Shown here: positions 1 to 64,000 of the stretch, in pieces | How the letters are laid out: the number at the start of each line of letters is the position of its first letter | Numbering within the stretch: position 1 is the first letter of the stretch | NCBI GenBank assembly: GCA_964035545.1 | Contig: CAXIUT010000103.1 | Location: 558,001 to 622,000, forward strand | DNA from: Bugula neritina | Lineage: Eukaryota; Animalia; Bryozoa | Reading direction: 5' to 3' | Length of the DNA stretch: 64,000 nucleotides | Notes under the pieces: model-generated | The model's input: only the letters and a program-made list of their open reading frames with translations | The model's database searches: none | Told to the model about the DNA's origin: nothing | Position numbers and translations under genes: made by a program

Positions 1-278
1 GTTGAAAATATGACTATGAAACATAACCCTTCAATTTCATTGCACCAGCACCAGTTGCAAGATAGGTGTGTTGGGAGTTATCTTTCCCAAAATTTTGTTC
101 TTTGTGTTTATACGAAGAAGACACAGGCTAATATTAGTTTTGTTATTTGCAAGAGTTTTTCTGTCTGATTGTCCATCAGCAAAAGTTTGGCCTTGCAGTT
201 ATTATGGAAATACCAGTGATGCTGGAAGACCTTTGCATTGTACACCCGCTTTTACTATTGAATTTAGATGTTTTATTT

Positions 279-309
279 TCCCATCCCCTCTCCTGCCCCC
301 CCTGTCCCC
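279..309 (-). other. G-quadruplex consensus in every satellite monomer (first copy shown)
   Basis: The minus strand reads GGGG-aca-G(6-9)-caggaga-GGGG-at-GGG, which fits the four-G-tract consensus. Confidence 0.6.
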
Positions 310-42300: not shown

Positions 42301-43145
42301 TGTGTTTATAGACTTGATAAATTTTTTTATGCAAAACTTGATGCCTGCTTCAAAGACACCAGTGCTTAATTACTGTGTTAACTGTATTGGCACGTTGCCA
42401 TGAGATATTTGGTAATATTTCGCATCACAACAAACTCTTCAGAAAGTTAAGAAAATCAGTCTAGAAAGTTAATGAAATAAACCTACCAGAAAGAGTAAGC
42501 CAGATGTAACAAGTAGATCCAAAACAAGTTGATTAACAATTGAAGTTGAAATCTCCATGTAGTCAACACTTTAGTCCTAATGTCAAATGCAAACGTCTGC
42601 AATCAAACTGTGTAGACTTCATGAGCTGGTTAGCTGAAAGGACTCATTAAAGTTCTTAACTCTTGTGTGTATAGTGATGCCCATCTTGAACTAGAGAGGG
42701 CTGACTGAAGACTGCTACTTTGTGAAAATTGACAATGCATATTATTATTATTCATTGTTTAGATTCACGACTGCCATAAACAATGATAAAATATTCATTG
42801 TTGGTACTACTGAGTAGAATAAAATATAATATAATATTATTTTCTGGACAAATAAATAATATCAAATGCATATTATAACTTACCATAAATCTACAGTGCT
42901 TCACATCTTCACTTTTTTCTGCAATGTTATTTCTTTGCAGTTAGAAGTACTAGTTGAAAATATGACTATGAAACATAACCCTTCAATTTCATTGCACCAG
43001 CACCAGTTGCAAGATAGGTGTGTTGGGAGTTATCTTTCCCAAAATTTTGTTCTTTGTGTTTATACGAAGCAGACACAGGCTAATATTAGTTTTGTTATTT
43101 GCAAGAGTTTTTCTGTCTGATTGTCCATCAGCAAAAGTTTGGCCT

Positions 43146-43152
43146 TGCAGTT
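43146..43152 (+). repeat. Left target-site duplication copy, (T)GCAGTT
   Basis: ggcctTGCAGTT|gcagtatatc. Uninterrupted monomers contain ccttgcagttattatgg only once. Confidence 0.9.
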
Positions 43153-43191
43153 GCAGTATATCTATTATCCTATACCACTATAGAAGTCGTA
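43153..43191 (+). repeat. Left terminus: degenerate TIR with subterminal palindrome TACCACT-N5-AGTCGTA
   Basis: Left cagtatatctattatcctataccactatagaagtcg aligns without gaps to the reverse complement of the right end, cagtgattcacacggcttttacgactgtcagggtcg (19/36). Confidence 0.7.
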
Positions 43192-43284
43192 GAGAACTTC
43201 GGGTCAATCAGTGGTAATGGGATTTGTATTACATTATATAGATTTCGTCAACGATCCTAGCCTAATGAGGCGCAATTGAAATAA

Positions 43285-43335
43285 GTAATTGATTGGCTGG
43301 AGGTACAACCAGTTCAACTTCATTGGTTAGGCAAC
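43285..43335 (+). promoter_or_regulatory. Paired reverse CCAAT boxes near the left end of the element (putative promoter)
   Basis: tgattggctgg (43290-43300) and cattggttag (43321-43330), about 30 bp apart. Motif evidence only. Confidence 0.35.
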
Positions 43336-44896
43336 GATCGTAACAACTAAAACAAGTGGTGGATACAGTTAGGGTTGACATTAAAACACGGCAATTTCTA
43401 GCAGTAATTTGCATTCTAAATCAATTTTTTCATGCAAAAGGTTTAAGAAGCTAGGAGTTATGAGAAAGAATAATATAATGTAATAATTTTGATTGAAAAG
43501 CTTTAACAAATGCAGGTCTGAATTTTTATTTAAATCCGCTCCTTTGAGACTTTGTTCTAAACAAAGGATATTAATTACTGTAGCTATTAGATAAGAATTT
43601 AGTCTTGTAAGTATTTTGAAAGCATAATTGTCTTCTCACTCAATTTCAGCTCATATTATAAATTTATCAATCTTCATTATAAAGACATAATTGTCTTCTC
43701 ATTAAATAATAGTCTATTACAACTTTATTGCTACCATAATATAATATCATTTTGTAAAATGTTTTTATTTTCATAGCATTTTTTGCTTAGTATTATAAAA
43801 TTTTATGCTGCATTGTATATAGCCTACATATGCATATAATGAGCTGCATGTAGTAGACGAAAAGAAATATCGCAATTATATAAAAGATGTAGAAATTATT
43901 TGTAGAATATAAACAAATGCAAAATAATTTAACAAACATATAACTTTACGAACCTCAGCATTTAAATTTAGTTTGCGGCAAGAATAATTTTTTGCTTGTA
44001 AAAAATTAAGTAAAAGATACCAACAATTTTGTTTCTTGTTTTTAATGTTATATTTGTTAACATTTTAGATGTGCCTGTATTACACTATATTGAGTTCTGA
44101 TTATTTTGGTTTAACATTGTAAATAACATATTGTGCAGTATATACAAAATGAGCACATATATAAAACATATACTCATAGTGAAAGTATAAGTTCTAGTTT
44201 TTTTTGCAAATTCATGCATACTATTTGAAATATATGCATACAACTTGGTGTTTCTGATTTGTACATGAACAATTTTATTGCTAAATGCTAAGTAATTATT
44301 TAAATTTTTCTACAACAAATTCGTCGACATGTTTTATATATACCATCTTTTAGCAAACACTTGCAACATTCCCATGCAATTACATATAACTGTAGCTATA
44401 GTAAGCTGTTCATAAAATAGCAACTATTATGAGTGCTGCATTTTTACACACACACTCACACATGCACACACACATGAAGAAAAGCAAGCATATAGTTTAC
44501 TGTCATGAGTTACTTGCAAAAATAAGTTGAAATATATGTTGAAGACTTCATACATTAATACAAATGGTATACTCTCAGACATGAGAGGAGCGACATAGTG
44601 CACATGCTCTTAGGAGTTGCATTATCACCTTCTTTCTTGGTGTCATCAAAAATATGGCATTGAAAGAAGACAATCACTGCTTTGGGGTTTACATATTTGT
44701 ATTCCTTTTAAAACGTAGTTAAAAATATATATACATATTTTCTAACTTGAAAAAATGCTCTATGTAGCTGCTTATATTTTAAAAAAAATTTTAGGTAGCA
44801 AAAGTAAGGAATTTTTGACATATTTACTGCAGGGGTGTGATAAACAAATGGACATAACATGCTTGTTTTAAAGCTAAAATATGATGTAACAGAATT

Positions 44897-44899
<3 letters not shown>

Positions 44900-44964
<65 letters not shown>
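44900..44964. repeat. (TA)n microsatellite, about 32 units
   Basis: Uninterrupted tatatata run. Confidence 0.98.
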
Positions 44965-44967
<3 letters not shown>

Positions 44968-45400
44968 ATATACATAATGAATGTCATTTCACTATATAAC
45001 AAGAAGAAATAGGCTGCTATTTTTACACTTCTGTGCAGTAATTTAAAAGCTTTGATAGCTTAACCTTCTTCATCTGGATAACAAATTTTAGCGTGGGGTG
45101 CGGGTTAATAAAAATGTAATCACAAGAACATGTACATAACTTAATTTCTCCATTATTGCACCAACTATCAATATTTACTTAATAACTAAACCCTATATTT
45201 AGCCCAGTGTTCAGTATCTAACTAATATGTATGTACTATATACACTGTCCACCTGTTGAGTGTTATTTAAAAAGTGAAAGAAATTCTACAACTATAGTCA
45301 TATTTGACCCATCACTATTATTACACATATCAATGTGTAAAATTAGTAAAAATAATTTAGTGGAAGTATTTGACAAGAATGCAAGATTGCAAAAAATTTA

Positions 45401-45472
45401 GCTAACTGCGAGGATTGAACCCATACCCAATGAGTGCAAAGGAAACGCGGTTTACCACGAAGCCAATGCATC
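45401..45472 (-). mobile_element. tRNA-derived SINE-like head with Pol III A and B boxes
   Basis: Minus strand TGGCTTCGTGG (A box, 45455-45465) and GGGTTCAATCC (B box, 45412-45422) at tRNA-like spacing. The acceptor and anticodon stems do not pair, so it is not a functional tRNA. Confidence 0.55.
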
Positions 45473-47471
45473 ACCTTAGGAAGAATGCCAATACATAAGG
45501 GATTATACTATAATGATATAAACAACAGCTAGAAAAATGAGTGGGTTATATTCCATCAGGGTGTTTACTAGCAGTGGATTGCCATCTTGTTTTAAAATTG
45601 GCCTATGACTCTGTTGCTACTTGCAAAGGTATCTTGATTAAATAAACCAACGGTTAAAAATAAACTGTAGTTTGTATATTATTACTAAGGCACAGCCAGC
45701 GGTCAGAGCTATGGTATATAAATATACACTGATGTACTAGGACCTAGGTAATAGATTGACAAGTCAAATTATCTTTTATAGGTAAACACACTTTGGTTTG
45801 AGAAAACATGCATGCAGCCTTAATTTTAGGTTTACGTCCGCAAATCATGAAAAGATCTAAACTAATATTAGAGGTAAATTTTAAAAATTAAATTAATTTT
45901 ACTTATTTTTACAATAACAAATTTTTTGGAGAAAATAAGTTGCTTCCTTTTTGTTGCAATGATATTCAACTTGCTTGAGCTATGGCCATCAGTGATGAAA
46001 TTTGAAACCCTGATTGTTTTGAGATAACTTTGTGACTTGTTATACATTTTTGCATATCTTTACCAACATATTACTTGATTCATGATAGTTTTCACATTGC
46101 AATTTATGGCATCAGTTGAGACTTGCACTCTGACAAAATATTAACAAAGCCAAACATATGGCCACACTACAGTGAAAGCTGGTTGGTTATATTAATTGTG
46201 GCTGCACTAGTCATGGTCCTAGCAGTTGGCCTACCATGGTATTGCCAGGTGCGAGCAAGCTTACAAGCATTTATATAGCTATAGCTAAACTGATAAGCTT
46301 ACAAAACATGTTGGCTAACATTATGCAGTTCACAATAGGCATATGGAAAACAAAGATGGTCAAAGGGTAATGATATTGTGGTTGACATAATATGTTAACT
46401 ATAAATAGTTCACGAATGCAGTTCCATTAGGCCTACTGGATTACCACTTATTTGCACTAACAGAATGTGTTACAAACGGGCCAGCAGGCAACTAAACCGT
46501 GTAATGCACAACTATTGACGTTATGCTATGTCATTATGCTCTGAAGTACGTTCTGTCATGGCTGAAAGTCACACTACTCTACACTTGCAGTAGCAATTCG
46601 TTTACTACTTCCATCACCAACACTTGCATTTTTATAGGGGCCAAATTCCTGTACCAAATGGTGTGCTATTCTTTCAAAACAGAGTACTATAAATATTATT
46701 TTGCTCATAGATTTTAGCAGACAAAGAATTTATACTAAAGACTACCCTATAGAAATTCTATTTAAGAAAAAACTTCAATCCTAAAATACTACCTATTGAC
46801 TTATACAGCTGAACAGAAAAAGAAGTAACCGCAGTTCGAGTATTTAGCATATCTGAGCCACAATTCAAAAATAAATAGAAGCATAGCACATGTGCATAGT
46901 TAATATCATATTATAATAGTTCATATAGTTTGTTTGCCTTTGACAGCATATTGAATATAATTTCTCTACTTGGCTGTAGGTAAGCCCTGCAGTTTTTGTT
47001 TTTATCTTAATTTACAATGAAAGAATAACTTGAAAAATGCAACCAAAAACTTATTATTGAAAAAAGGCTTTTAACTACTCTGCTAACTATGGCTTTTAAT
47101 TGTCAATAAATGACCCTTTTAATCTAACTATTGCATGGTGCTGAGACGACTGATAATTATGTGTAAAAATGTGTGCAGGTGGGATTAATTAGCTGAGAAA
47201 CTTTATTAACCTAAGCTCTTAAACTACAAGAGCGTTGATTAGGGGTGCATGGTAAAACGAAAGTTATTTCACTGCTTTTCCTCTATAAAACTGAAGCCTT
47301 TCCAAATATATTTTTATTGCACCAGCTGGTACAATCTAAAAATAAAACCAAGCTGAACAATCAAATTAAAAGAATAGGCGTTTTATATCTTAACTTGTTG
47401 AAATGGTGCAGTAAAATTTGTTTGTTGCCTTTTAGGTAAATATTCACCAGGGCTGACATTGACTTCTTTAT

Positions 47472-47632
47472 CACTGCGTTTCCATGACTTCGCATAATGC
47501 GAATGAATTCTGTACGGATTATTTGCGGTTTGTGGTTTGCATTAACTTATAGTTGCGTTTCATCGGATGTAACTGTTCCCATTAGCCGAATGAAAAAATC
47601 CATTCGCATAATGCGATAATGGAAACGCAGTG
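47472..47632. mobile_element. Small MITE (161 bp) with TIRs of about 32 bp
   Basis: cactgcgtttccatgacttcgcataatgcgaatg ... cattcgcataatgcgataatggaaacgcagtg. Confidence 0.8.
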
Positions 47633-47769
47633 TACTTCGCTTCTATGACTGAGCATTTTGTGAATTTGTAGTTGCAGTAACTCATCAGTTGTGGTGTCCT
47701 TCGTTATGTAATTAGTTCCATGAGGTGATGAGAAATCCATTTCGGAATGAGAATGATGAATTGCAGTGC
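47633..47769. mobile_element. Older diverged tandem copy of the same small MITE
   Basis: Start acttcgcttctatgactgagcattttgtgaat resembles actgcgtttccatgacttcgcataatgcgaat. End gaaatccatttcggaatgagaatgatgaattgcagtg resembles aaaatccattcgcataatgcgataatggaaacgcagtg. Confidence 0.55.
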
Positions 47770-48360
47770 ATGTAGGCTGCAGCTTCCAATTTTCTTAAAT
47801 CAACCATTAGGCTATGTGTACAAAAAAAGGCAAAATACTTTGCTGTGGCCAACAGTCTGAAAAATACCAGCTAGCACTGAATAAAGCACAATAAGTATAG
47901 CTTATTTGCAATGCAATGTTGAGTTTTAGAAAGGTCTCAAGTTAGTGTTATTTCCTCACCACTCATGTGGAAAATTTACCAATACTCCCTATTGCTAAGA
48001 CTTTGTGCTATGCATCTAATTACTAAGGTGTGAGTTTTTAGAACCAATACTAGAATGTAACTCCTTGCGATTATGTGGGAGAGAGATGACATATTTGTTG
48101 TCAGTCAATATATATTGTAGGCTTGCCTATTACAGAGCTCAAGCCTAGCTCTTTACAATAAAAAGTACAAAGGTATGAAAGAACAATAGTATGACAACAG
48201 AACCATGCGGTATCGTAACAATCAGGATGCAAATCATCTTGATTATATAGCTAGATGCTTTTCTTCTCTAACGTAGATGTTCTTGTCAATAGTGAAGCTG
48301 CACTTAAACTCAAATGGCCACTTTCTTTTAGACCTGTAAAAGCAAAATATATTTCAACAG

Positions 48361-49511
48361 TCAAACTAAATAAGTTGAGGCGATGGTTTCATTGAAGTGA
48401 CACATAGCAACAGAGTATGCAAAACAGGGGTAGAAAAAGAAATAGGGTAAGGCTCCATCAAGAAGACGCCAACAAAATTGAAAATGCTGATATAAAATGT
48501 GCATTTGACTGACAATGTCTTTTGGCAATAAATTATGACTGCAGACAGCCCCTAGTTCTTAGTACCTAGAGGATCAATTAGGTTTCATGGAGATGAGTTG
48601 TGCTACATAAGCAATGAGGGTAACTAGTCAATATTCTGAATGCCCATTGCTCCGAAGGTCCATTAGTCCGAAAATTAGTACACACAGGCATCCTCAATGA
48701 GAATATCATTAATTTCACTCACAATTCAGTTTAAGTTCTAGCTATGTTATTGCTCTGTGGGTGGCATGTGTGTTGCCTACTTGCTACATCATCTATCAAC
48801 ATGATTATGCGTACGGTACATTATTAATTACAGGCTTGCGAGGTGACAGGCTAATGAATAGCTTGGTGTGTACTTTGTTTATGGAGCAGCCATAATGGAA
48901 TGTTGATAAACGATACAGCCCTTATTGATCATAGTGTAATCTCAGGCTAAACAATCACAAATAGGCAACACGCATGCCACCCACAGATCAATAATATAGC
49001 AAGAACTTAAACTGAATTGTGAGTGATATTAATGATATTCTCAGTGAGGATGCCTGTGTGTACTAATTTTCGGACTAATGGACCTTCGGAGCAATGGGCC
49101 TTCGGAATATTGCTTCGTTCCCAGAAATGAAGGGATCTGAGACAGGGCGGCAGTAAATGCAGTAACTATATTTGTGGGAAAGAGAAGGCTGGAATAATAT
49201 GGGCACCTATGCAGCAGAGAACAATAAAACAAGAAGGGAATCAGCTACATCAGTGTGAAACTCCAGAGAAAGGGAGCAAGACCAAAACATTTAAACATGG
49301 GGGTTAAAAATCAAAAGAGATCATAGATTAGTGCAGAACACTGCGACCTAAAAGAATACAGTGAAGAATAGGAGGATGGCAAAATTAAGTAAAACAATGA
49401 GTATGAGAGTGACACCACTTGTGAAGCCGAAGTTCTATTTCTTTTAATTAATTGGTGAAAAAATATAATAGCAACTTTTATGACAGTCTTGTAGATTGGC
49501 TGTGTGATGAG
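48361..49511 (+). pseudogene. Possible relic of a second, convergent element gene (PHD-like RWFH and Ulp1/C48 protease-like WLCDE motifs), interrupted by a MITE
   Basis: Acceptor tttcaacag, then KLNKLRRWFH*S. A purine-rich, coding-like tract follows and ends in KYNSNFYDSLVDWLCDE|gtgact, resembling the Ulp1 WLxDEVI motif. No catalytic His/Cys motifs were found. Confidence 0.35.
48618..49122. mobile_element. MITE / foldback element with arms of about 165 bp and a spacer of about 175 bp
   Basis: 48618-48783 is the near-perfect reverse complement of 48958-49122 (e.g. tccgaaggtccattagtccgaaaattagtacacacaggcatcctca vs tgaggatgcctgtgtgtactaattttcggactaatggaccttcgga). It has GGG...CCC ends and 15-bp subterminal repeats. 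No clear TSD. Confidence 0.85.
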
Positions 49512-49615
49512 GTGACTTGAATACAGCAGCCATGAGTAAAACCTGGCTGCAAATTAAAGCAGAAGGTGAACATTTTATGTATAATATAAGAGATATATTC
49601 AAAAATTGAAATTAC

Positions 49616-49701
49616 CATAAAAACTGTAGTCCTTGTCTGATAGTCAAAATAAATTGGCTGCCATCCATAATTTCATCATTCATAATTTCATCTTGATTAC
49701 A
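49616..49701 (-). pseudogene. Probable downstream exon of the transposase pseudogene
   Basis: Acceptor ttttgttttgcag, donor gtaatt, open frame CNQDEIMNDEIMDGSQFILTIRQGLQFL. Confidence 0.35.
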
Positions 49702-50478
49702 CTGCAAAACAAAATGAAGTATTTTGTTGATCACATGTATGAGTTTGAAATGAACTATGGTAACAAATATTAACATAATATTTCCTTGCATTTAGTGCAT
49801 TTTTTAGTTAAGTAACTAGTCTGAATACTTCACATTGCAGTTTAATTTTCTAAACCAAACATACATTGATGAGCCTGAACTGAACAAGTGTTAGGTCAGC
49901 TTGACTAAAATATAACCATAAATACCATCAATATAAATTAGGGGTTTGTTGATTAAAATATAGTAAAGTAACAGAGTAAAATTAAAACAACCCTGAACAA
50001 TAGCGTAGTAAAAGTGTACATTCAGGACTCCACACTTGAGGAGTATAGGAGAATGACAAAAATCAAGTTCAACCATATGAAAAACTAGGAAACATACTGA
50101 CATCATGTCCAAATATTCTTCCAACTGTCAAACATTTTAAACACTTAAGAAGAAAAATACCTCAAAATTGTGTGCATTATTTTTAGGTCTTCAAAGTTAA
50201 TGCTTGTTCATGAAGATAAAGAAAAAAACTGAGAAACTGATTATTCATGTAAAAGTAAATGTAATAATTTGACTATGTTCTGTAGTAAAAAAATTATGAT
50301 GACTTCTTTTTCTAATATGTGTAAAGAGATAATATACTAGGTAAGCAATGCAGGGCTTTTTAATCATTTAAATTTGTGCTCAAAGTATATTATATTACCA
50401 CTAAGCCTTAAGATATGCAATTTATTTTTAGATCATCTGTTATCATAATAGACTTTTAATTTTGTACAAATGATTTAC

Positions 50479-50569
50479 CTGGACAAGCAAAACAAAGTCT
50501 TTCCATTACATCTTCTATGTCAGCATTTTTCAGCTTCACCACAACAGCCATCGAGTAGTTCATTTTAAA
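50479..50569 (-). pseudogene. Probable downstream exon of the transposase pseudogene
   Basis: Acceptor ctttttag, donor gtaaat, open frame FKMNYSMAVVVKLKNADIEDVMERLCFACP. No diagnostic motif. Confidence 0.4.
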
Positions 50570-51292
50570 CTAAAAAGAAATAATTAATTTAGGAAATACA
50601 ATGATTGCCTATGTAAAAAGTGACAATGTATGCACGTATGGCATCTGAAGCCACATTTAACTAACTATTCAACTTGCTAATATCATTTTTAAATACGTTT
50701 TTGAAAATGGAATTAAGACAGTTATGAAAAAAAATTGATAACAATAAGAATATATGTTGAATTAGGTAATCATAGGTAGCAACTATAATAATCATAGTGA
50801 AAGAAATAATTTCGAAGGGTGATGAAGTAATTCAACAGAATAAAAACTATGATGTGACTTTTAATTGTCACAATAAGAACTTTGGACAAAAAAAAACTTT
50901 GCAGGCTTTGAGTTATATATAAATAAAACCCTTTGGAATTTTTTGAAAAATAGTCTTACGAGACATAATAATACATAGTTAAGTTTTAGATTTTTACAAC
51001 ACACTATGACTCATAATTAGTTAATAAAATATTCTTTTGTAACTGCATAGTGCATATAACATCTATTTGAATCAATTTGATGGAGTTTGTGAAATTTCTT
51101 GTTTGAAAATTACAAAAACTGGCGGCATGTTCGAGTTGTTGAAAATAGCAAAAAACAAGTAGTAAACAAAGTTAAATAACATTTGCAAAACCTTATACAA
51201 TGTGCTGTTAAATGCTTGGACAGATACTATCTTGAATAAGATTAATGCAAGCTTAAAAAAACTTTAAAGTTGAAAGGCATATATTTTGTTAC

Positions 51293-51518
51293 CATCATAA
51301 TTCATATGCTGTGTAATCAAGCCACATCTTGAGATATAAATATTTTTCTGCTCCGTGGTCTCTTCAGTACTTAGACCTATGCCTTGCCACACTCTACCAC
51401 TGCACTTAGCCTTCAATCATAAATCACGATGACATGCAGTGTAAATGTTGCAGCTGTGGCCTGGTGAATAAGGATATTTTCCAACCACAATTTTTAACAA
51501 AACAAAACAAGTTCTCAC
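51293..51518 (-). pseudogene. KDZ transposase pseudo-exon containing the GxGLxxGExxE motif region
   Basis: ttttttag|...VVGKYPY / RPQLQHLHCM / AKCSGRVWQGIGLSTEETTEQKNIYISRCGLITQHMNYD|gtaac. Matches the family pattern SGR..GxGLxxGExxEQxNxxLSR...TxxM. The HAxxH motif is absent and GE has become EE. Confidence 0.85.
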
Positions 51519-52032
51519 CTAAAAAACTAGAAATCAAATATAAAGAAAAATAATTGATTTTTAGTTTGATTATATGGTTTAAACCTGCATTTGCATAGGG
51601 GTAGTTGAAGTCTAAACATTCACCAGATTCGCATACATTATTTTCAATATTTCATGTTACCTAAAACTAAAATATATCTAATACTAAAACATCTATTAAA
51701 GTGTAGTAACTGACATGTTCAAATGTGTGCCTTAGCGAACATCACACTCAAAAAGTAATCGTGAGAGGAAACAAGCTTTGCTTGCATTTTAGAAGTCAAG
51801 AGAAGTACCGTCACCTTACATTGGTAGCAACAGATTGTGTACCAAGAAATTGTTTCTAAAACTCCACAAAAATATAATTAAAACGTTGAAGATTCTACAG
51901 GCAAAAAGTTCTGAATAGATTTTTATAAGCAGAGGACAAATTAAATTTTGCAAATAATTTCAAGCACAAATAGTCACTAAACAAACTTTATATGCATATA
52001 AATAAAAGCCAGCAATACATTAATTAACTTAC

Positions 52033-52158
52033 TTGCATTATATAAGGATAAGCACAGATCTCCCTCTCTCCATATCCAATGCCTTACATATAAGTGCCTG
52101 AAACCGTCTTTGCAGCTTTCCATTCAATTCCTCCACAGTGGTCACCAACTGAAATATT
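52033..52158 (-). pseudogene. KDZ transposase pseudo-exon (CG..WxAA and M..GE..AYP motifs)
   Basis: ttttcag|NISVGDHCGGIEWKAAKTVSGTYM*, then KALDMERG / EICAYPYIMQ|gtaagt. The intervening DxxG..CRHG segment expected in the family is missing and there is a 1-nt frameshift. Confidence 0.8.
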
Positions 52159-52639
52159 CTGAAAAATTAAATAATAATTTAACGTACCCATACAATTCTT
52201 ACTTGTTTGCTCATATTGAAAACAAAAAAAATGAAAAAATAAAACAAGACATGTGACCATCGAACAATAGTTGGTAAATAGTATTGTACTGTAAATCATA
52301 CGCAATCATTATCAAGAGTCTATAAAAATCATTCCAAACAGATAACTTTTAAGTTGTAGTCAGCAGCTCATATGAACAGAGTTGTCATTGTGAACATTTC
52401 AATAATGAAAAGGATATTTATATTCCCATTGAACTTAAATACCCATATTATAAGTACATCTAATAACGCAGCAAACTCCCTTTTAAAATCACATTAATAT
52501 AGCATCAGCAAAAGAACACTAAATGGCAAAAGCAGTTTGAAAACCAATTTCAGATTGAAAATTTAATTGATCAAATATTGCTTTTTTATTTAGATTAAGA
52601 CTCATTGCGGTAAACAAGCAAGAAAACTTTGTGATATGG

Positions 52640-52900
52640 ATAAGAAAGGTTTTAAAACAAAAGCCATGATTTTCAAAAAGTCTGCACCACACTTAAAATC
52701 AACACCATCCTAGATGCTACACCAGAGCAACGAATAATTAAAACAGTATACCTTGGAGAGTTAATAACTGATATTGCATGGTTAAAATGAACAAGAAATA
52801 AAGAGAAGAAATGAACTGGCAAAAAATGCTTTCCAGGATATTTCTTAAGTATATTGACATTAGAAAAATCAAAATACAAACACGAGAGAAATTACTATGC
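52640..52900 (+). mobile_element. Degenerate RTE-like LINE reverse-transcriptase fragment, inside a transposase intron
   Basis: KTKAMIFKK ... YLGELITD ... EQEIKRRNELAKNAFQDIS* / RKIKIQTREKLLC matches the KTKxM..YLG..EIKRRIxxAKxAF..LxxRKIxxxTR pattern, with frameshifts. Confidence 0.8.
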
Positions 52901-54039
52901 AAAAAATTCTTCCCCATATAACAAGCAGATATTATTAGTTATTTATCAGTAATGCATCTACTAGGCATAGACTCACAAGGTTTCATAGTTGATTGTAAGA
53001 ACAAGGTCGGCAAAGGTTTTTGGATGTTGCAATAAAGATAAAACTCAAACCTTAGTGTGTTAGGATAAATGAGCAAAGACTCTACCTATGCTACCAGAAG
53101 CAGCAACTGGTCCCAAAAAGTGGAGTAAAACTTTACACTTTTAATGATGATGTTTTATGATCATTATTATTAAAAAAATGTATATCATACTGATAAAACT
53201 ATAGCGGTAAATGTGAAACATATAATTCATATCAATATTCACACCGTATAAGAGTATTTACTTAAAATGGCTTATTCATTTGGAATTGTAACAATACTCA
53301 CAAGTAACAGAACACGTACCAATAAAATAACAATCACTGTAAAAAATGAGTATTTAACACCATAAAAACCTAAAGCATTGATACTTGTGGTACATCTAGT
53401 ACTAAAGCACTTACAGACTTACAGTGGTAGTCTGTTATCACTAAATCTAATGATTTTCACAGTTCTCAATCAAGGTATTAGACACCATAACTACTAGTGG
53501 GCCTACTACTACTACTAGTACTAGTAACTAGAGTACTACTACTACTAGTACTACTACTGTACTAGTAGTAATAATAATTTATATCAAAAATGAGCACATT
53601 GTGATTGTTTTACTAATAATATTCTCAACCTAATAGCAATAGTACCAACCTGATCCGTAATGGGTTTTCCTGAAGAATGGAACTAGATTGTAATTACCGA
53701 CATGTGTATACATACTAAATTAGTCTCTAATAATATATTATTATGAAATTTATGATTATCGCCCCATTTGCGGAGTAGTCAGGCCGAGTTTATTATGAAC
53801 ACAAGAGTCGAGTAAATTTGCGCAGATAAATTACTGGCCACCATGATAGACCAGACCTGTTTTGACCGAATATCGGTTCTACTTGAACACTAGAATCGCC
53901 CCCAAGGTCCAATGCCTAATTGAGTCCGCGGCTCCTTTGGTCAAATGACCCAAAGATTCAATTTCAATTTTGAATACCATAGGCGTGCTCAAACTTATAG
54001 TTATAGGCTAGGGCATATGCATGGTTATTATTGGAAAAT

Positions 54040-55000
54040 AGATTAATAATTAGTAATACTAATACTAATAGTAATACGAATGCACTAATGGTAATAGTTA
54101 TAATGTCACGATTAGACTTTACATTTGCTCTTACTCTTAGTCTTAGTTATAATGATAATCATATTTATAAACATGAATATCGCTCTCACTCTGACTCACA
54201 CTCTAACTCTAAGTCTAAGTCTATCAGCATCACTATCAGTATCACTACCAATATGAATATAGCTATAACTATAAGTATTACTCAATCAGTTTCACTATGA
54301 CTATGATAAAATCATAAAATGATAAATAATCCACTAATACTTAGTGATAACAGTTACTGATTAGAGTGATCTTAAATTAGTAATCAGTATAGCTGTGAGT
54401 ATAACTCACTGTAGTACTCTTAATCATAATCATAATGGTAGTGGTATGAGTATCACTATCAGTATGGGATCAACTAATACTAATAGTAATACTGTAAAGT
54501 GTAATACTAATACTAATACAGTATTACTAATAGTAATAGTATCAAATCGAAATTAATCAATAGTAAATATAGTTATACTTAAACTTAAAGACTTATACTT
54601 ATAGTAGTAATAGTTATACTTATAGTATTAGAACCTTATACTATGTCTATAGTCTATGACGGCATGACATACCCATAAATGGTGATGTCTAAGTCCTACT
54701 TCAAAGTAGCAGTTAAACTTAAAGTTTGATATTCTACTCTGTATAACCGAGACTGACTATCATACACCTTACATGTCATGCTGAGTATCATTATGATTAT
54801 CACTTGAGGTTTATGAGTATCACTTTCAGTAAGATAATCATACTATGACTATGAGTTATACTTATAGTCACACCCCGATACCCATACTTCTACTTCTAGT
54901 GATCTACTCTTACTCCTAGTTCTACGGGCAAGGCTACTCACTCATACTCATAGTCATAGTAACTGATAGTGGTGTAACCTAAACTAATACTATAACCAAT
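54040..55000. repeat. Degenerate 3/6-bp periodic low-complexity region
   Basis: Arrays such as agtaatactaatactaatagtaat, actctaagtctaagtctatcagcatcactatcagtatcact and agttatacttatagt. Confidence 0.75.
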
Positions 55001-56649
55001 GCCAAAAGACAAGGTAAAGCTAAAATTAAAAATAGAAACCAAAGGGTCATAAATCATATATGTAATGGTGTTTTAGTTTATGATTGTTTATGTTCATTTT
55101 ATGTTTATTCTACCAAGTACCAACTCATCAGTCACTTAGTTTTATAGTGATAATTATACTTACACTTATAGCCTACACCCTATAGCTTATTTAATTTTGA
55201 CTCTACCTTGCCCTTTGGCAGTGATTTAGTTTTAATTAAATTGTTATATTTAATGTTTTTCATGAACTTTATGAAATTTTATTGATAAGATATCATATAG
55301 TAATAGTGATAATTGTATCATAATGATGATATTGATATATAAAACATTATGACCATCAATGTATCACTGTGAATGTAATAATTTTTATATAAGTAAATTA
55401 ATTTACTATTAAATAAAACTTGCGCAAGTTTATAGTTGGCATCCCTGTGAGAAACCCCTGATGGGAAAGGTTTTTTGTTAAATGGGGCTAAGCAATTATT
55501 TGGTTGGAGCATAGGAGTAATTATGACTGGATGCTTTTCCTAACAAATGACAGTAATGAAAAATTGAATATGATTGTTATCTAATCATTATGTAAGGTTA
55601 ACCTTTATGTTAGGAATCTCAATAGCACGAGCATACAATTCAATCATCGCCATGTTGGCTGTGATTTTCTTAATCATACTTATTAAGCTTGCAGTTTTTG
55701 ATATTTGATAGATATAGTATTCATAATAATAGTCACTTAAATTTGATGGTAATATTGATCAATAAATTTTAAGTACACTGACTAAATCTAATGATTAGTG
55801 GTAATGAAACTAACGACACTCAAACTGATTTGCCTCAAGACTGAACTATGTTTTCTAAGTGATGACAGACTAAGATTAAGTTTAATAATAGGGCAGTAGT
55901 ACATGTAACTAAAAGTATAAGCTAAAGTATACAACCATAAGTGAGTAACCATGATGTTATCTCGACCAACGCAATCTCAATACCAATACCTGATTTATTG
56001 AAAATGTTACTATATATTTGAGTATGAGTATGTAACTGTATTAATATGATAAAACTTATACAGTTATGCACATAGTGCTAGTGAAAGTATCTCAAACCGT
56101 TGCAAAATCCAACTTTATTCAAAACTTTGCTACAAATACTTGAGTTTTTATTTTAAGGTTGATCATAAAAAGTTAAAATTATTGTGAATAAATTAATTTT
56201 AACTGTTCATTTTACTTCAACATTATCTTTTAATTTAATAAAGTTTTAATGAATATTAATTTATTTATTTTTCAACAAGTCACTGTTTTAATTAATATAG
56301 GTATAAGTTTAGGTATCTAATAACTTTAACCATCATTATATTCATCATTTTTAATTTGTATGCCAATTGCTAAATTATAATACCTATACTGATATCACCA
56401 CTGTTGAATTATTTTTCTTATTCACCTATGTTTGTAATACGGTTATTGCTTGTTAGTTAGTAGCATATATAACAACTATAGTAATAGCTATAACTACAAG
56501 CATATTTAATATGCTAAGGTATATTGAGAGATTGTCATAAATATCTCAGTGATCATATACATGACACCCTTAGCATTCATGTCTTGAACATCTAGCCATA
56601 GCTCCCTTTATATTGTTTCCAGTGTTGAATGCCCATCCTGCAAGAATGC

Positions 56650-57085
56650 TTTGCCTCCATTTGAGAGGTGGTAAATTGATTGGATTTTATGTAAAATTCC
56701 TTAAGCTCTTGTTTCAGGACATCCTCAAACCTTAGATATAAGTTCTTCTAGCTGGATGAGTTCCTTTTGATATTAATGCATGCAATCGAGTGCGGCGGAT
56801 GAGATACTTTGGCATGTTGACCAGCCCAGTGAAGACAGAAGAAATTCAGTTTTGAAGAAAGAGAATCCGAGTCTGTGATTTCAAATACATCTTCATTTAT
56901 CATTTTATCTTCCCAGATTTTACTCAACATGCATCTTAAACTCCAGGTATGAAAAGTGCTGAGCTTTGATTCTTGCAGTCCACATGTTGCCCATGTTTTT
57001 GATCCACAAGGAAGAATGCTGAGAACACCAACTGCGTAGACTTTTCTTTTGGCGTGAATATTAGGGTGGTTGTTTGTCCATATTT
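56650..57085 (-). mobile_element. Degenerate RTE-clade LINE fragment (region C-terminal to the RT core), inside a transposase intron
   Basis: WTNNHPNIHAKRKVYAVGVLSILPCGSKTWATCGLQESKLSTFHTWSLRCMLSKIWEDKMINEDVFEIT...LHWAGQ...LRFEDVLKQELK matches the RTE pattern KxxVYxxxVLSxLLYGSETW..FHxxCLRxILxIxWxDKVxNxEV..LRWAGH..RFKDxLKxDLK. Confidence 0.85.
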
Positions 57086-57840
57086 GCTAGTTCACAAAGT
57101 GGAATTATTTTGGTATTTGTCATATCCTGCAGAGCCCATTTAAATGTTTGAGCAGAAAAAGTAAAAATAAATATTTTGCAGTGTGTTTACTGTTTTGATG
57201 ATGGTTTTAGGGAAACATCTAGATTTACCATTCATGTACTTGTGACAGGCCTGTGTTTCAGCGATTATAGGAGAGTATAATTTTTCTTTAATAGAAATTG
57301 AGTCATGCAAGGGAAGCTGGTTTCCTTACTTTATTAAGCAAAATTTGCTATCACAACAACAGAAGTGTTGCTAGCCTTGATTTGGAAACATTTTATATTT
57401 ATAACTCTGAAGCCTATTTTGAGACATTTGGCTGCATGTTGGATAGATTGCATAGCATCTTTACTTGCGCTAATACTTAGAAGCATTTACTTGGTTTTCC
57501 TATAGTTTTATTTTGAATGTTTTTATGATATATTGCAGAACTGTGGGTTCATTCTACTTGTAAGTATATTCCATAGGTCTAACTCAAACCCTGTGAATTT
57601 TCAAGTTAATATGGCAAGCTATGATGAAAGAAATGCTAAACTAGACAGGTAATAGAAAAGAAAGTCCGATAACTTTTTTAATTGTAATTTAAATTACTTA
57701 GCTTGCATTACTCAACAGTATGGTAGCAGTGGTAGAACCAGCAGCAGCAGCAGCAGGAGTAGATTATAGTATAGTAGTATTGATAAAATGATTGATAGAT
57801 TAGAACTGTAATTTTGAATATTAAAAATATGACAATGCCA

Positions 57841-57930
57841 CTGTGCGCCATAAATTTCTTGTTGGCCATTAAAATCAGCCATTAAATCAGTTTTCTTTTG
57901 GCTAGAACAAGCACTGCTGCCTGGACATAG
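57841..57930 (-). pseudogene. KDZ transposase pseudo-exon around the CPAC...DGNxKL motif (first catalytic Asp region)
   Basis: Reads CPGSSACSSQKKTDLMADFNG, then frameshifted NKK(L)WR, consistent with a decayed CPAC-x-DGNxKLxR motif. Confidence 0.5.
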
Positions 57931-58569
57931 TAATATATTATATGTATGGACTGTATGTTAATTATATGTAGAGGAATTATTTTTGCTAGCTTTAATAAAA
58001 AACCCTGCTCGTTTCTCATATTATTGTATTGTCAGTTTCAGCAATTTCAGGCCAGATAAATTTAAATTATACCTTGCAAATTTTAGGCCTGTTCCAGTCT
58101 ACCTGTCAACACATTTGTTTGATCTAATCTAATTATGATGGCCTTCCAAGCAATGTAGTTAGCAAAAGTGAGAGAACTAATATTGCTTTTTCAGCCTATA
58201 TTATGTTTGAAACCAGTAAAATAATAGAAATCATGAAACTAGTAATAGGCAATCCTATAATGCTGTTTAATAAACTTATTTGCGCTGTTACTTTAGTGAT
58301 TTCGACGCTGTTTTATAAATTATTAGCAATCTTTTAAAAATGAATAAATATACATTTTCTTTTAGTATGTCACCAATTGGAATATTTTGACCTGTATACC
58401 TATCTAGTGGAGGTGTTAATTTGTAAACATATTGGTTTTACCAAGATCAGTGATTAAAGCAGTTGCTGAAAGCCAAAATAAAATGCTAACTAAAGTTCAT
58501 ATCTAGTGGGCTACAATTTGCCAACTTCTATAAAGCATATAATAGCTAGTAATTGTTTCTATGCTGTAC

Positions 58570-58807
58570 CACTTGACGGTCTGTTCTCTTTTACCTTACT
58601 CTATATTATGCTGTATAAATTCTAGCACACCTATCTGGTTTTTAATCATTTCTTGCACCATATGCCAATAATTTTTACGTAGATGCATACAATCGGACAG
58701 CTGGATAGCCTGGCTATTGTGGAGAAGCATCATAACCACCTGCTTGGTGTTGGAGCTGAGTGCATATCAAGGTGGGTAGCACAACTTCTTAGTTCATAAG
58801 TAGCAGC
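58570..58807 (-). pseudogene. KDZ transposase pseudo-exon, N-terminal cysteine-cluster (CxC3-like) region
   Basis: Manual translation gives VVLPTLICTQ...Q*PGYPAVRLY and, in another frame, WHMVQEMIKNQIGVLEFIQHNIE*GKRE. This resembles the LPxxxC..GYWP..W/F..G.S..F segment of animal KDZ proteins. Confidence 0.5.
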
Positions 58808-58944
58808 CTAGTTTTTTAAAAGGTTTGACTATATTAAAATATAAACATTTTGTTATTGCACTAATACAATGATAAAAATATGAGCAAACAGTTTCCAATA
58901 TAACTTGCTGCTGGTAAGATTTACAGTATTTGTAGTAGAAACAA

Positions 58945-59152
58945 TATTAGTAGTGGTAAAAGTAGTAGTAGCAGTAGTAGTAGTAGCAGTAGTAGTAGTA
59001 GCAGCAGTAGTAGCAGTAGTAGAAGTAGTAGCAGCAGCAGCAGTAGTAGAAGTAGTAGTAGCAGTAGCACTAGTAGTAGTAGTAGTAGCAGTAGTATAGT
59101 AGTATAGTAGTAGAAGTAATAATAATAAAATAATAGAATTATTAGTAGTAGT
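58945..59152. repeat. (TAG/CAG)n trinucleotide microsatellite
   Basis: Runs such as agtagtagtagcagtagtag. They explain the poly-T/V/L ORFs in the track. Shorter related tracts lie near 53503-53570 and 57717-57780. Confidence 0.95.
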
Positions 59153-60063
59153 GGTGAAGTTGTTTTTGGTTCTGACGTTAGTACTGTTAGCGGTAGAGAT
59201 GGTGTTGGTAGAAATAGGATTAGTGGTTGTGCACTCATAGTTGAAGGCATAAAGCATAAACCAGAATTGAATACATATATAACATAGATATGATATGAGT
59301 TCTTATTTATATTGATTTACTATCTTGCATGAACATGGCATTTTCGCTATCAACATTAGTGTTTGTATTATACACTTTCACTAAACAAGCTTGTTAAATT
59401 TATAAAAAATTATGTAGGTGATGACTGTTGCATATCTGTGTTTAATTTTAAAAATATCATGTTGCATAATTATTTTTTAGGTGTCTGGTGAGCGGACGAC
59501 TTCATTTTCGGCTGCTTCATGGCACCTTTATTTTCGGAAAAGATGTAACCACTTGTAAAATCAGTTTTTTTATGGTGAACTTAACAATATAATGTTTAAC
59601 AAAATTCTTTCTTGGTTAAAAATAAAGGTATACCGTCTTTGGCTTTCTGTTATTTCTATATTGTGTTCTTCTGTTGCTATGTGTAATTGATGAGATGACT
59701 CCAAACTCTTGCACATCCGCCACAATAAAGTAGATAATTTTGCTATGGGCATCAAGATTTTGTTATAAGTAGATATAGTTTTGCAATGATAGTGTTGATG
59801 CTGCAGCAGGTAACATTCTAGTAGGATAAACCAAACAGAATTTAAGCTAAAACATTCTAAAAAAATACAGCATCGCTTGAGCCACCTTGCCTTCTCTCTT
59901 TTCTAGGCAAAAGTTGTTAGCTAAATAAGGAAAAGACAAATTAATGATTTCTGTGAGAGTTGTCTACTACAAAAATTACTTAGCAGATCATCATTAGTAA
60001 CCATAACAACACGTACATGTTTACAGCACTCATGTGCTCTCTTTGTTCTGATTCGTCAACAGT

Positions 60064-60180
60064 AGCGCCCTAGACAGTCGATGTTATCGCACGAAAATAT
60101 ATTGTTTATTGCGGCTAATATCGCGAAATGGCAAAATGAGGATCGACCCTGACAGTCGTAAAAGCCGTGTGAATCACTGT
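60064..60180 (-). repeat. Right terminus: degenerate TIR with two copies of a CGMCC-N5-AGTCG motif, CpG-rich
   Basis: atcgacc-ctgac-agtcgta (60142-60160) and agcgccc-tagac-agtcgat (60064-60082). There are 11 CpGs in 60051-60180 against a CpG-poor background. Confidence 0.7.
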
Positions 60181-60186
60181 GCAGTT
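60180..60186 (+). repeat. Right target-site duplication copy, (T)GCAGTT
   Basis: gaatcactgTGCAGTTattatgg, matching the left copy exactly over 7 bp. Confidence 0.9.
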
Positions 60187-63100
60187 ATTATGGAAATACC
60201 AGTGATGCTGGAAGACCTTTGCATTGTACACCCGCTTTTACTATTGAATTTAGATGTTTTATTTTCCCATCCCCTCTCCTGCCCCCCTGTCCCCTCTAAC
60301 AACCAGCAATCCTGACTCATGTGAATTGTGTTATTGTTCTAGAGTTGGCCCATGGGCCTACAGTATACGATTTGAATCTTTATAGTTTACAGGCAGTGGA
60401 GATGAGTCACTGCTAAAACCCATTTTGTTAGTAGACTATATTGCTCTTCAATCATCAGTTTTCATATTAAAAGAGAAAGCTCATCTGCAGCGCCATTTCA
60501 CAGTGTTTTATTTTGCTAGAGCAATAACTAATTTTAGATGCCTTTGCAAACATATGAGAAATAAATGAGTGATTCTATGAAAAGAGGTGTTTGCAGCAAT
60601 TGTCCACTTTTGATTTTTAAGCGGCATGGAAACTTTTGTAGTTTTAAATAATATCTCCAAACTCATCACTTGCATGTGTTTATAGACTTGATAAATTTTT
60701 TTATGCAAAACTTGATGCCTGCTTCAAAGACACCAGTGCTTAATTACTGTGTTAACTGTATTGGCACGTTGCCATGAGATATTTGGTAATATTTCGCATC
60801 ACAACAAACTCTTCAGAAAGTTAAGAAAATCAGTCTAGAAAGTTAATGAAATAAACCTACCAGAAAGAGTAAGCCAGATGTAACAAGTAGATCCAAAACA
60901 AGTTGATTAACAATTGAAGTTGAAATCTCCATGTAGTCAACACTTTAGTCCTAATGTCAAATGCAAACGTCTGCAATCAAACTGTGTAGACTTCATGAGC
61001 TGGTTAGCTGAAAGGACTCATTAAAGTTCTTAACTCTTGTGTGTATAGTGATGCCCATCTTGAACTAGAGAGGGCTGACTGAAGACTGCTACTTTGTGAA
61101 AATTGACAATGCATATTATTATTATTCATTGTTGAGATTCACGACTGCCATAAACAATGATAAAATATTCATTGTTGGTAGTACTGAGTAGAATAAAATA
61201 TAATATAATATTATTTTCTGGACAAATAAATAATATCAAATGCATATTATAACTTACCATAAATCTACAGTGCTTCACATCTTCACCTTTTTCTGCAATG
61301 TTGATTCTTTGCAGTTAGAAGTACTAGTTGAAAATATGACTATGAAACATAACCCTTCAATTTCATTGCACCAGCACCAGTTGCAAGATAGGTGTGTTGG
61401 GAGTTATCTTTCCCAAAATTTTGTTCTTTGTGTTTATACGAAGCAGACACAGGCTAATATTAGTTTTGTTATTTGCAAGAGTTTTTCTGTCTGATTGTCC
61501 ATCAGCAAAAGTTTGGCCTTGCAGTTATTATGGAAATACCAGTGATGCTGGAAGACCTTTGCATTGTACACCCGCTTTTACTATTGAATTTAGATGTTTT
61601 ATTTTCCCATCCCCTCTCCTGCCCCCCTGTCCCCTCTAACAACCAGCAATCCTGACTCATGTGAATTGTGTTATTGTTCTAGAGTTGGCCCATGGGCCTA
61701 CAGTATACGATTTGAAGCTTTATAGTTTACAGGCAGTGGAGATGAGTCACTGCTAAAACCCATTTTGTTAGTAGACTATATTGCTCTTCAATCATCAGTT
61801 TTCATATTAAAAGAGAAAGCTCATCTGCAGCGCCATTTCACAGTGTTTTATTTTGCTAGAGCAATAACTAATTTTAGATGCCTTTGCAAACATATGAGAA
61901 ATAAATGAGTGATTCTATGAAAAGAGGTGTTTGCAGCAATTGTCCACTTTTGATTTACAAGCGGCATGGAAACTTTTGTAGTTTTAAATAATATCTCCAA
62001 ACTCATCACTTGCATGTGTTTATAGACTTGATAAATTTTTTTATGCAAAACTTGATGCCTGCTTCAAAGACACCAGTGCTTAATTACTGTGTTAACTGTA
62101 TTGGCACGTTGCCATGAGATATTTGGTAATATTTCGCATCACAACAAACTCTTCAGAAAGTTAAGAAAATCAGTCTAGAAAGTTAATGAAATAAACCTAC
62201 CAGAAAGAGTAAGCCAGATGTAACAAGTAGATCCAAAACAAGTTGATTAACAATTGAAGTTGAAATCTCCATGTAGTCAACACTTTAGTCCTAATGTCAA
62301 ATGCAAACGTCTGCAATCAAACTGTGTAGACTTCATGAGCTGGTTAGCTGAAAGGACTCATTAAAGTTCTTAACTCTTGTGTGTATAGTGATGCCCATCT
62401 TGAACTAGAGAGGGCTGACTGAAGACTGCTACTTTGTGAAAATTGACAATGCATATTATTATTATTCATTGTTTAGATTCACGACTGCCATAAACAATGA
62501 TAAAATATTCATTGTTGGTACTACTGAGTAGAATAAAATATAATATAATATTATTTTCTGGACAAATAAATAATATCAAATGCATATTATAACTTACCAT
62601 AAATCTACAGTGCTTCACATCTTCACTTTTTTCTGCAATGTTATTTCTTTGCAGTTAGAAGTACTAGTTGAAAATATGACTATGAAACATAACCCTTCAA
62701 TTTCATTGCACCAGCACCAGTTGCAAGATAGGTGTGTTGGGAGTTATCTTTCCCAAAATTTTGTTCTTTGTGTTTATACGAAGCAGACACAGGCTAATAT
62801 TAGTTTTGTTATTTGCAAGAGTTTTTCTGTCTGATTGTCCATCAGCAAAAGTTTGGCCTTGCAGTTATTATGGAAATACCAGTGATGCTGGAAGACCTTT
62901 GCATTGTACACCCGCTTTTACTATTGAATTTAGATGTTTTATTTTCCCATCCCCTCTCCTGCCCCCCTGTCCCCTCTAACAACCAGCAATCCTGACTCAT
63001 GTGAATTGTGTTATTGTTCTAGAGTTGGCCCATGGGCCTACAGTATACGATTTGAAGCTTTATAGTTTACAGGCAGTGGAGATGAGTCACTGCTAAAACC

Positions 63101-64000
63101 CATTTTGTTAGTAGACTATATTGCTCTTCAATCATCAGTTTTCATATTAAAAGAGAAAGCTCATCTGCAGCGCCATTTCACAGTGTTTTATTTTGCTAGA
63201 GCAATAACTAATTTTAGATGCCTTTGCAAACATATGAGAAATAAATGAGTGATTCTATGAAAAGAGGTGTTTGCAGCAACTGTCCACTTTTGATTTTTAA
63301 GCGGCATGGAAACTTTTGTAGTTTTAAATAATATCTCCAAACTCATCACTTGCATGTGTTTATAGACTTGATAAATTTTTTTATGCAAAACTTGATGCCT
63401 GCTTCAAAGACACCAGTGCTTAATTACTGTGTTAACTGTATTGGCACGTTGCCATGAGATATTTGGTAATATTTCGCATCACAACAAACTCTTCAGAAAG
63501 TTAAGAAAATCAGTCTAGAAAGTTAATGAAATAAACCTACCAGAAAGAGTAAGCCAGATGTAACAAGTAGATCCAAAACAAGTTGATTAACAATTGAAGT
63601 TGAAATCTCCATGTAGTCAACACTTTAGTCCTAATGTCAAATGCAAACGTCTGCAATCAAACTGTGTAGACTTCATGAGCTGGTTAGCTGAAAGGACTCA
63701 TTAAAGTTCTTAACTCTTGTGTGTATAGTGATGCCCATCTTGAACTAGAGAGGGCTGACTGAAGACTGCTACTTTGTGAAAATTGACAATGCATATTATT
63801 ATTATTCATTGTTTAGATTCACGACTGCCATAAACAATGATAAAATATTCATTGTTGGTACTACTGAGTAGAATAAAATATAATATAATATTATTTTCTG
63901 GACAAATAAATAATATCAAATGCATATTATAACTTACCATAAATCTACAGTGCTTCACATCTTCACTTTTTTCTGCAATGTTATTTCTTTGCAGTTAGAA
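60181..64000. repeat. Same macrosatellite, right arm (about 2.9 monomers, continues beyond window end)
   Basis: Resumes at gcagttattatggaaatacc in the same orientation and phase where the left arm stopped. Marker ORF at 61240 and 62580 (period 1340). Confidence 0.99.

Follow-up and report, generated by a model that had tools for sequence, protein, structure and literature searches.

A very recently inserted giant non-autonomous transposon, probably of the KDZ superfamily, in a macrosatellite of Bugula neritina

We analysed a stretch of 64,000 nucleotides from the genome of the bryozoan Bugula neritina (hereafter the window; contig CAXIUT010000103.1, here C112, positions 558001-622000 of a 216-Mb assembly), in which a macrosatellite array is interrupted by a block of 17 kb. 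Our reading, to which we give a probability of roughly 0.88, is that this block (window 43154-60179) is a non-autonomous DNA transposon of the KDZ superfamily, that it belongs to an animal clade whose transposases combine CxC3 and KDZ domains, that it makes a target-site duplication (TSD) of 8 bp resembling those of Zisupton and Dileera, and that it was mobilised by a transposase encoded in longer copies of the same family. An initial annotation, made from the letters of the window, had described the block as a giant non-autonomous KDZ transposon freshly inserted into a macrosatellite. That description holds in all of its parts, and at 17,026 bp the element is indeed a giant, but the limits and the duplication given with it required correction.

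The insertion can be read from the satellite itself. Self-distances between k-mers show that the array repeats every 1,340-1,344 bp, and satellite k-mers fill window positions 1-43152 and 60181-64000, with none in the block between them. Tandem Repeats Finder (TRF) reported no array in the window because the longest period that it accepts is 500 bp, and the period was taken from k-mer spacing instead. At the target position all 34 intact monomers read ...GGCCTTGCAGTTATTATGG..., which provides the empty-site reference, and the split monomer reads ...CCTTGCAGTT/GCAGTATATC...ATCACTGT/GCAGTTATTATGG, with the slashes at the junctions. The distance between satellite markers over the insert is 18,374 bp, the sum of 17,026, 8 and 1,340, and therefore not a single base of satellite sequence was lost. 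Both the k-mer map and this sum agree with the initial annotation that a unique block splits one monomer without loss. Its limits of 43153-60180 (17,028 bp) captured a real insertion and were one base too wide at each end; likewise, the duplication that it saw exists, but is not an exact 6-bp repeat, since its GCAGTT is the inner part of an 8-mer that matches at seven of eight bases (TGCAGTTG on the left and TGCAGTTA on the right, the mismatch adjoining the left end of the element). Its claim that the locus defines both termini to within 1 bp is correct.

The precise limits come from the other copies of the element. When the 600-bp ends of the insert were used as genome queries, each was found about 35-40 times in the assembly, left and right ends being paired 17-32 kb apart, and both junctions were retrieved for 30 other copies. 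The window element has the termini 5'-CAGTA...CACTG-3'. Every one of the 30 other copies starts with CAGTATATC, and all but one older copy, whose tip has diverged, end in ...GATGCACTG (among the right ends examined, GATGCACTG was found in 28 and GATGGGCTG in one older copy); this common start and end places the window element at 43154-60179 and makes its TSD 8 bp long. A perfect 8-bp direct repeat, of a different sequence in each copy, flanks 26 of the 31 end pairs, and a 7-bp duplication was seen in one pair alone. The TSDs are rich in A and T; G is weakly over-represented at position 1, and so are pyrimidines at position 8. The two tips of the element have in common only CAGT(A/G)(T/C)ATC, that is, CAGT plus three of the five bases that follow, and a search of the element for a longer terminal inverted repeat (TIR) or a subterminal repeat found none beyond 4-9 bp. 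Over the terminal 70 bp of either end, the 17-kb copies hardly differ from the long ones. Two of the paired copies (C7:12121254-12147361 and C6:2324863-2344269) have no matching TSD, and they may reflect recombination between copies or a deletion beside one end.

Taken across the genome, the family numbers at least 35 copies with paired ends, each 17-32 kb long, and these fall into three structurally different subfamilies with common ends. The window copy belongs to subfamily A, whose 17 members are 99.9% alike; a copy on C5, for example, is 99.9% identical to it. The third subfamily (e.g. C8:1850865-1868321) has its right part in common with the others, is 79% identical over the left 600 bp, and carries N-terminal exon remnants only, including a CxC3 remnant at 71%. 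A second subfamily-A copy lies in the same array as the window copy but in inverted orientation (C112:635623-652649), 17.4 kb and 13 monomers downstream and 13.6 kb past the end of the window. The sibling has the TSD GGAAATAC, and within the monomer its target is offset by 12 bp from that of the window copy; the orientation of the satellite is unchanged on all sides of both elements. Since the two siblings differ at 3 of 17,026 positions, the window insertion is evidently very recent. Two of these three differences are the adjacent substitutions near the right tip that are private to the window copy, so that, together with the TSD mismatch, its private changes are located at the element ends; they could be errors of integration repair, later mutations or errors of assembly polishing. 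Neighbouring copies are also closer together in the genome than expected, with 6 neighbour pairs less than 120 kb apart against 0.8 expected (P ~1e-4), and pairs or triplets within 120 kb are found on C2, C7, C8, C9 and C112. The TSDs of the clustered copies differ, which makes them separate insertions, and the clustering fits local reinsertion.

The identity of the element rests upon what remains of its gene. When the long-copy KDZ exons were searched against the window copy by tblastn, they gave colinear matches on the minus strand with E values of 1e-14, 4e-10 and 2e-7 (the exons are placed in Table 1), and annotated animal KDZ proteins match window 51291-51407 directly (tblastn, E 6e-5). 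The KDZ motifs that the initial annotation had picked out on this strand are therefore real. The gene is nevertheless dead: the longest open reading frame (ORF) in the window copy is at most 134 aa, tblastn found no trace of the CxC3 and DGN exons in it, and these absences, together with in-frame stops and a gap in the surviving exons, mean that the copy is non-autonomous, as had been claimed. It is also, judged by sequence comparison, a mosaic and not a simple deletion derivative of an autonomous element, since its gene remnant has only 38-60% protein identity to the long-copy gene and its flanks have 93-96% DNA identity to the same copies. The DNA that it has in common with the long copies is limited to the first 1.6 kb and the last 7.6 kb, and the counterpart of the latter in the long copies lies upstream of the transposase ATG and reaches to within about 50 bp of it. 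A dead exon of the E9 type is present in the 17 copies of subfamily A, and the only other relatives of it are in the five long copies, at 60%, and at two weaker loci. We infer from this pattern that the non-autonomous elements may be recombinants, in which the flanks of the active lineage are joined to dead genes of an older one.

Table 1. Features of the window (positions counted from its first base; E numbers are exons of the long-copy gene).
Feature	Position	Strand	Basis or remark
Macrosatellite array, ~32 monomers	1..43145	+	k-mer period; no ORF or Rfam family recognised
Left TSD copy, 8 bp, TGCAGTTG	43146..43153		last base departs from empty-site TGCAGTTA
Transposon copy, subfamily A, 17,026 bp	43154..60179	+	termini CAGTATATC...GAATCACTG; transposase remnant on minus strand
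Left-end region common to 26-32 kb copies, ~93% identity	43154..44749	+	first 70 bp nearly identical in all copies
Nested MITE-like (miniature inverted-repeat transposable element) insert, 165-nt inverted arms 92% complementary	48619..49122		arm search
Weaker colinear remnants: E10 51103-51141, E11 50465-50548, E15 49672-49725	49672..51141	-	tblastn
Open KDZ exon remnant, SGR..G.GLS.EE..EQ.N..SR	51267..51416	-	60% identical to E9
Decayed KDZ exon, ..LSVMFAKAHI*TCQ, in-frame stop inside HAKAH..C	51677..51793	-	59% identical to E8
Decayed KDZ exon, CG..WKAA ... GE..AYPY, 18-aa gap and in-frame stop	52027..52152	-	38% identical to E7
Right 7.6 kb, common in blocks with long copies, 94-96% identity	52598..60179	+	upstream of transposase ATG in those copies
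112-aa open fragment, probably of a retroelement	56751..57086	-	28-35% identical to >100 genomic ORFs of ~1,000-1,100 aa; no Pfam match
Two adjacent private substitutions, 6-7 nt from right tip (GAATCACTG)	60173..60174	+	end comparison
Right TSD copy, 8 bp, TGCAGTTA	60180..60187		equals empty site
Same macrosatellite resumes, orientation and phase unchanged	60188..64000	+	k-mers, monomer alignment

What the window copy has lost appears to be preserved in the long copies. In a genome-wide six-frame scan, all of the short exon matches to Pfam KDZ (PF18758) fell within five family members of 26-32 kb. In the copy at C8:3598894-3625026 three exons match this profile in colinear order, the first at profile positions 55-106 (30.5 bits), the next at 119-165 (22.7 bits) and the last at 165-205 (21.1 bits), and an exon scan found CxC3 in a piece upstream of them (24.6 bits, E 2.3e-5). 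These Pfam scans were run exon by exon on open pieces of at least 44 aa, so that short exons may hide weak domains; a genome-wide CxC3 scan returned one unrelated match and did not list the long copies. The gene model that we assembled for this copy is free of stops and has 17 exons encoding 785 aa, from an ATG at C8:3606063 to a TAA ending at C8:3613351, and from residue ~163 onwards it aligns with the CxC3 region in each of two related proteins, P0080 and P0114, for which the CxC3 scores are 64 and 37 bits. RNA-like contigs that two studies provide for this organism show seven joints across the gene; all seven keep the frame, six have GT..AG borders, and the seventh fits GT..AG after a shift of one base. 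The remaining introns were set at good GT..AG sites. Throughout the five long copies, exons E2-E14 have open frames and undamaged splice sites, at 99.4-100% identity, and E15 is intact in the four from which it was retrieved (the three exons upstream of E2 were checked in one long copy alone). An exact TSD flanks four of the five. It is therefore plausible that the long copies are autonomous elements of the animal CxC3-KDZ clade with a predicted catalytic transposase. Pfam scans of the other open pieces of a long copy gave a weak zinc ribbon only, and no cargo gene was identified.

Two further observations concern KDZ sequences in this genome and its transcripts. At C8:3609072-3609945, within the gene just described, unspliced contigs with a depth of ~200-330 span KDZ exon/intron borders in an RNA-seq run labelled 'symbiont metagenome'. 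They carry 4-5% mismatches before running into unrelated sequence, and the same form occurs in the organism's own run, which suggests a related and highly represented copy or a chimeric transcript. A separate KDZ lineage consists of intronless frames of 451 aa that match Pfam KDZ with 38 bits (C4:11721561, C4:11728328, C5:10985459 and C8:6196648).

The placement of the family is reinforced by its protein relatives. When one exon served as the phmmer query, the animal proteins recovered were 600-1,000 aa long and came from teleosts, a starfish (Patiria) and a jellyfish (Sanderia); among the ten relatives scanned, eight have Pfam CxC3 followed by KDZ and two have KDZ without a CxC3 match. The 785-aa model is 27-35% identical to annotated animal CxC3-KDZ proteins over 300-600 aa, with E values down to 1e-57, and keeps all of the conserved motifs that were checked: C..C...VDGN.KLY, CG..W.AA, GE.FAYP, D(V/I).C.Y.P, LSVMHAKAH..C and G.G..GE..EQ..S.LSR. 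The same CxC3-KDZ architecture and motifs are found in Patiria miniata XP_038071093.1, Mugilogobius chulae KAK7901625.1, Coilia grayii KAL2102430.1 and the EukProt models of Sanderia malayensis. These records are bare gene models for which no element ends are described, whereas in the present family a whole element is defined together with its ends and TSD. The Pfam KDZ matches in three long-copy exons, the CxC3 match and the similarity of the model to the animal proteins thus bear out the superfamily assignment that had been made from motifs.

How might a dead element have moved so recently? The 785-aa transposase would, we infer, recognise the near-identical terminal sequences of the 17-kb elements and would excise or copy them. 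Insertion would then follow a staggered 8-bp cut, the repair of whose gaps would generate the TSD. Subfamily A may in this way have been amplified very recently in trans, with reinsertion favouring nearby sites, and that activity would have given rise separately to the window copy and to its inverted sibling. The stronger proposition that the family is active now, with an expressed CxC3-KDZ transposase moving segments of 17-32 kb almost without TIRs and reinserting them nearby, is one that we hold only tentatively, at somewhat less than even odds.

A number of points weigh against the interpretation offered here. The initial annotation had looked to Pfam profiles to test its KDZ exons, and in this it was disappointed: hmmscan with single exons of the window gave no Pfam match at E<=10, and homology was instead established through the intact genes of the family and by tblastn with KDZ proteins. 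The CxC3 exon of the long copy scores 24.6 bits by itself, below the Pfam cut-off of 26.6. Splice-site quality, and not RNA, fixes nine of the model's 16 introns, and the runs that supplied the seven joints are only guessed to be RNA, although the joined GT..AG forms argue that they are. The window copy itself departs from the family at one TSD position and at two positions of its right tip. Its junctions were read in the assembly sequence; the metagenome contigs contained no match to the left junction or to the element tip. Finally, transposition activity is judged from the near-identity of copies.

Three other explanations deserve to be weighed beside ours. The element might be a KDZ transposon moved by some other transposase, either that of the intronless 451-aa lineage on C4, C5 and C8 or one whose source has been lost from the assembly. 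Such frames do exist in the genome, and the gene remnant, being only 38-60% identical to the long-copy gene, points to an ancestor of a different lineage. However, the terminal 70 bp at both ends are those of the long copies, which also have the same 8-bp TSD pattern, and the assembly contains no closer intact relative of the remnant; we therefore regard this as improbable. It is far less probable still that the element belongs to the hAT superfamily. Elements of the hAT superfamily make 8-bp TSDs and have CAG-type tips, and the family studied here has both an 8-bp TSD and 5'-CAG tips, but CxC3-KDZ is the only transposase-like coding sequence in any of its members, no hAT, BED or dimerisation domain was found in the scanned pieces (at least 44 aa) of the window copy or of a long copy, and any TIR is limited to 4-9 bp.

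The remaining alternative is an artefact of assembly, or else a segmental insertion that had nothing to do with transposition. Satellite arrays are hard to assemble, and the junctions, as said, rest upon assembly sequence. Against this, the flanks restore a full monomer of 1,340 bp plus a duplication of the length that is usual for the family, 30 other copies stop at exactly the same bases and have TSDs of their own, and the sibling in the same array has another site, another TSD and the opposite orientation. We consider this explanation very unlikely, and mobilisation of a non-autonomous KDZ element by the long-copy transposase remains the reading that we prefer.

As a biological category the element is not new, KDZ transposons being already known. 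The Zisupton DNA transposon was reportedly described by Bohne et al. in 2012 and is entered in Repbase as Zisupton. With Zisupton and Dileera, both of which make 8-bp TSDs (PMC12730594), the present family shares the length of its duplication, large size, a multi-exon KDZ gene in which a CxC cluster precedes the KDZ domain, and an animal host. The canonical Zisupton architecture is CxC4, KDZ and SWIM (PMC11343200), whereas the family described here has CxC3, showed no SWIM or CxC4 in the exon-by-exon Pfam scans, and is almost without TIRs. Kyakuja elements have 7-bp TSDs and CA..TG tips without TIRs (PMC12730594); our family has the same 5'-CA..TG-3' termini, lack of TIRs and KDZ transposase but an 8-bp TSD (26 of 31 pairs), and the Kyakuja families are described from fungi of the Agaricomycotina, often with TET/JBP genes on board (PMC12730594), whereas no such gene was seen here. 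The closest experimental parallel is in Cryptococcus, where KDZ1-3 and KDZx1 are mobile elements of 6.4-10.9 kb with 8-bp TSDs and CxC1 or CxC4, KDZ1 having a TIR of 236 bp and KDZx1 none (PMC11343200). These elements are likewise large, with 8-bp TSDs and extra non-transposase sequence, and in KDZx1 they also lack TIRs; their demonstrated mobility supports the mechanism proposed here. They differ in that the present family has an animal host, CxC3, two to three times the size (17-32 kb against ~6-11 kb for the characterised fungal KDZ elements), and abundant non-autonomous mosaic derivatives. In Pristionchus, multi-exon Zisupton-like genes were found with TIRs, but no TSDs were detected (PMC9297572). 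The Bugula family resembles them in its invertebrate host, multi-exon KDZ gene and recent burst of copies, and differs in having clear TSDs and almost no TIRs. We therefore file it in the KDZ superfamily, within the animal CxC3-KDZ clade, and not as Zisupton sensu stricto, because it has CxC3 in place of CxC4 and SWIM, near-absent TIRs and a size of 17-32 kb.

Several other features lie within the element and its target. The inverted arms of the MITE-like insert (Table 1) are found again throughout the genome, paired in inverted orientation at distances of 2-9 kb, which marks them as the ends of a different DNA-transposon family that is nested in subfamily A. The probable retroelement fragment is present in subfamilies A and C and absent from the long copies. 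An imperfect trinucleotide (GTA/GCA) tract lies in the common upstream region, at 58906-59103 in the window and at L069:958-1606 in a long copy; its length varies by subfamily and it is open in several frames (poly-Ser, poly-Thr, poly-Leu and poly-Val). As for the target, Rfam recognised no family in either the satellite or the element, and no ORF in the satellite monomer was convincing; the idea that a multicopy RNA gene had served as the insertion target was dropped on these grounds.

KDZ/Zisupton transposases are widespread in animals, yet the relatives retrieved here are uncharacterised gene models only, and the mobility experiments that we found for KDZ elements are those in Cryptococcus (PMC11343200). 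The Bugula neritina genome offers a complete and internally consistent KDZ system, with exact ends, 26 clean TSDs, about 34 empty-site references, three subfamilies, and an apparently intact, transcribed transposase gene in five copies. The near-identity of its copies implies very recent movement of units of 17-32 kb, and the end requirements and size limit of KDZ transposition are directly testable in this family. If the family is indeed active, its members would be among the largest animal elements of the cut-and-paste type whose ends are defined, and would provide a natural starting point for the biochemistry of KDZ transposition or for the transfer of very large cargo.

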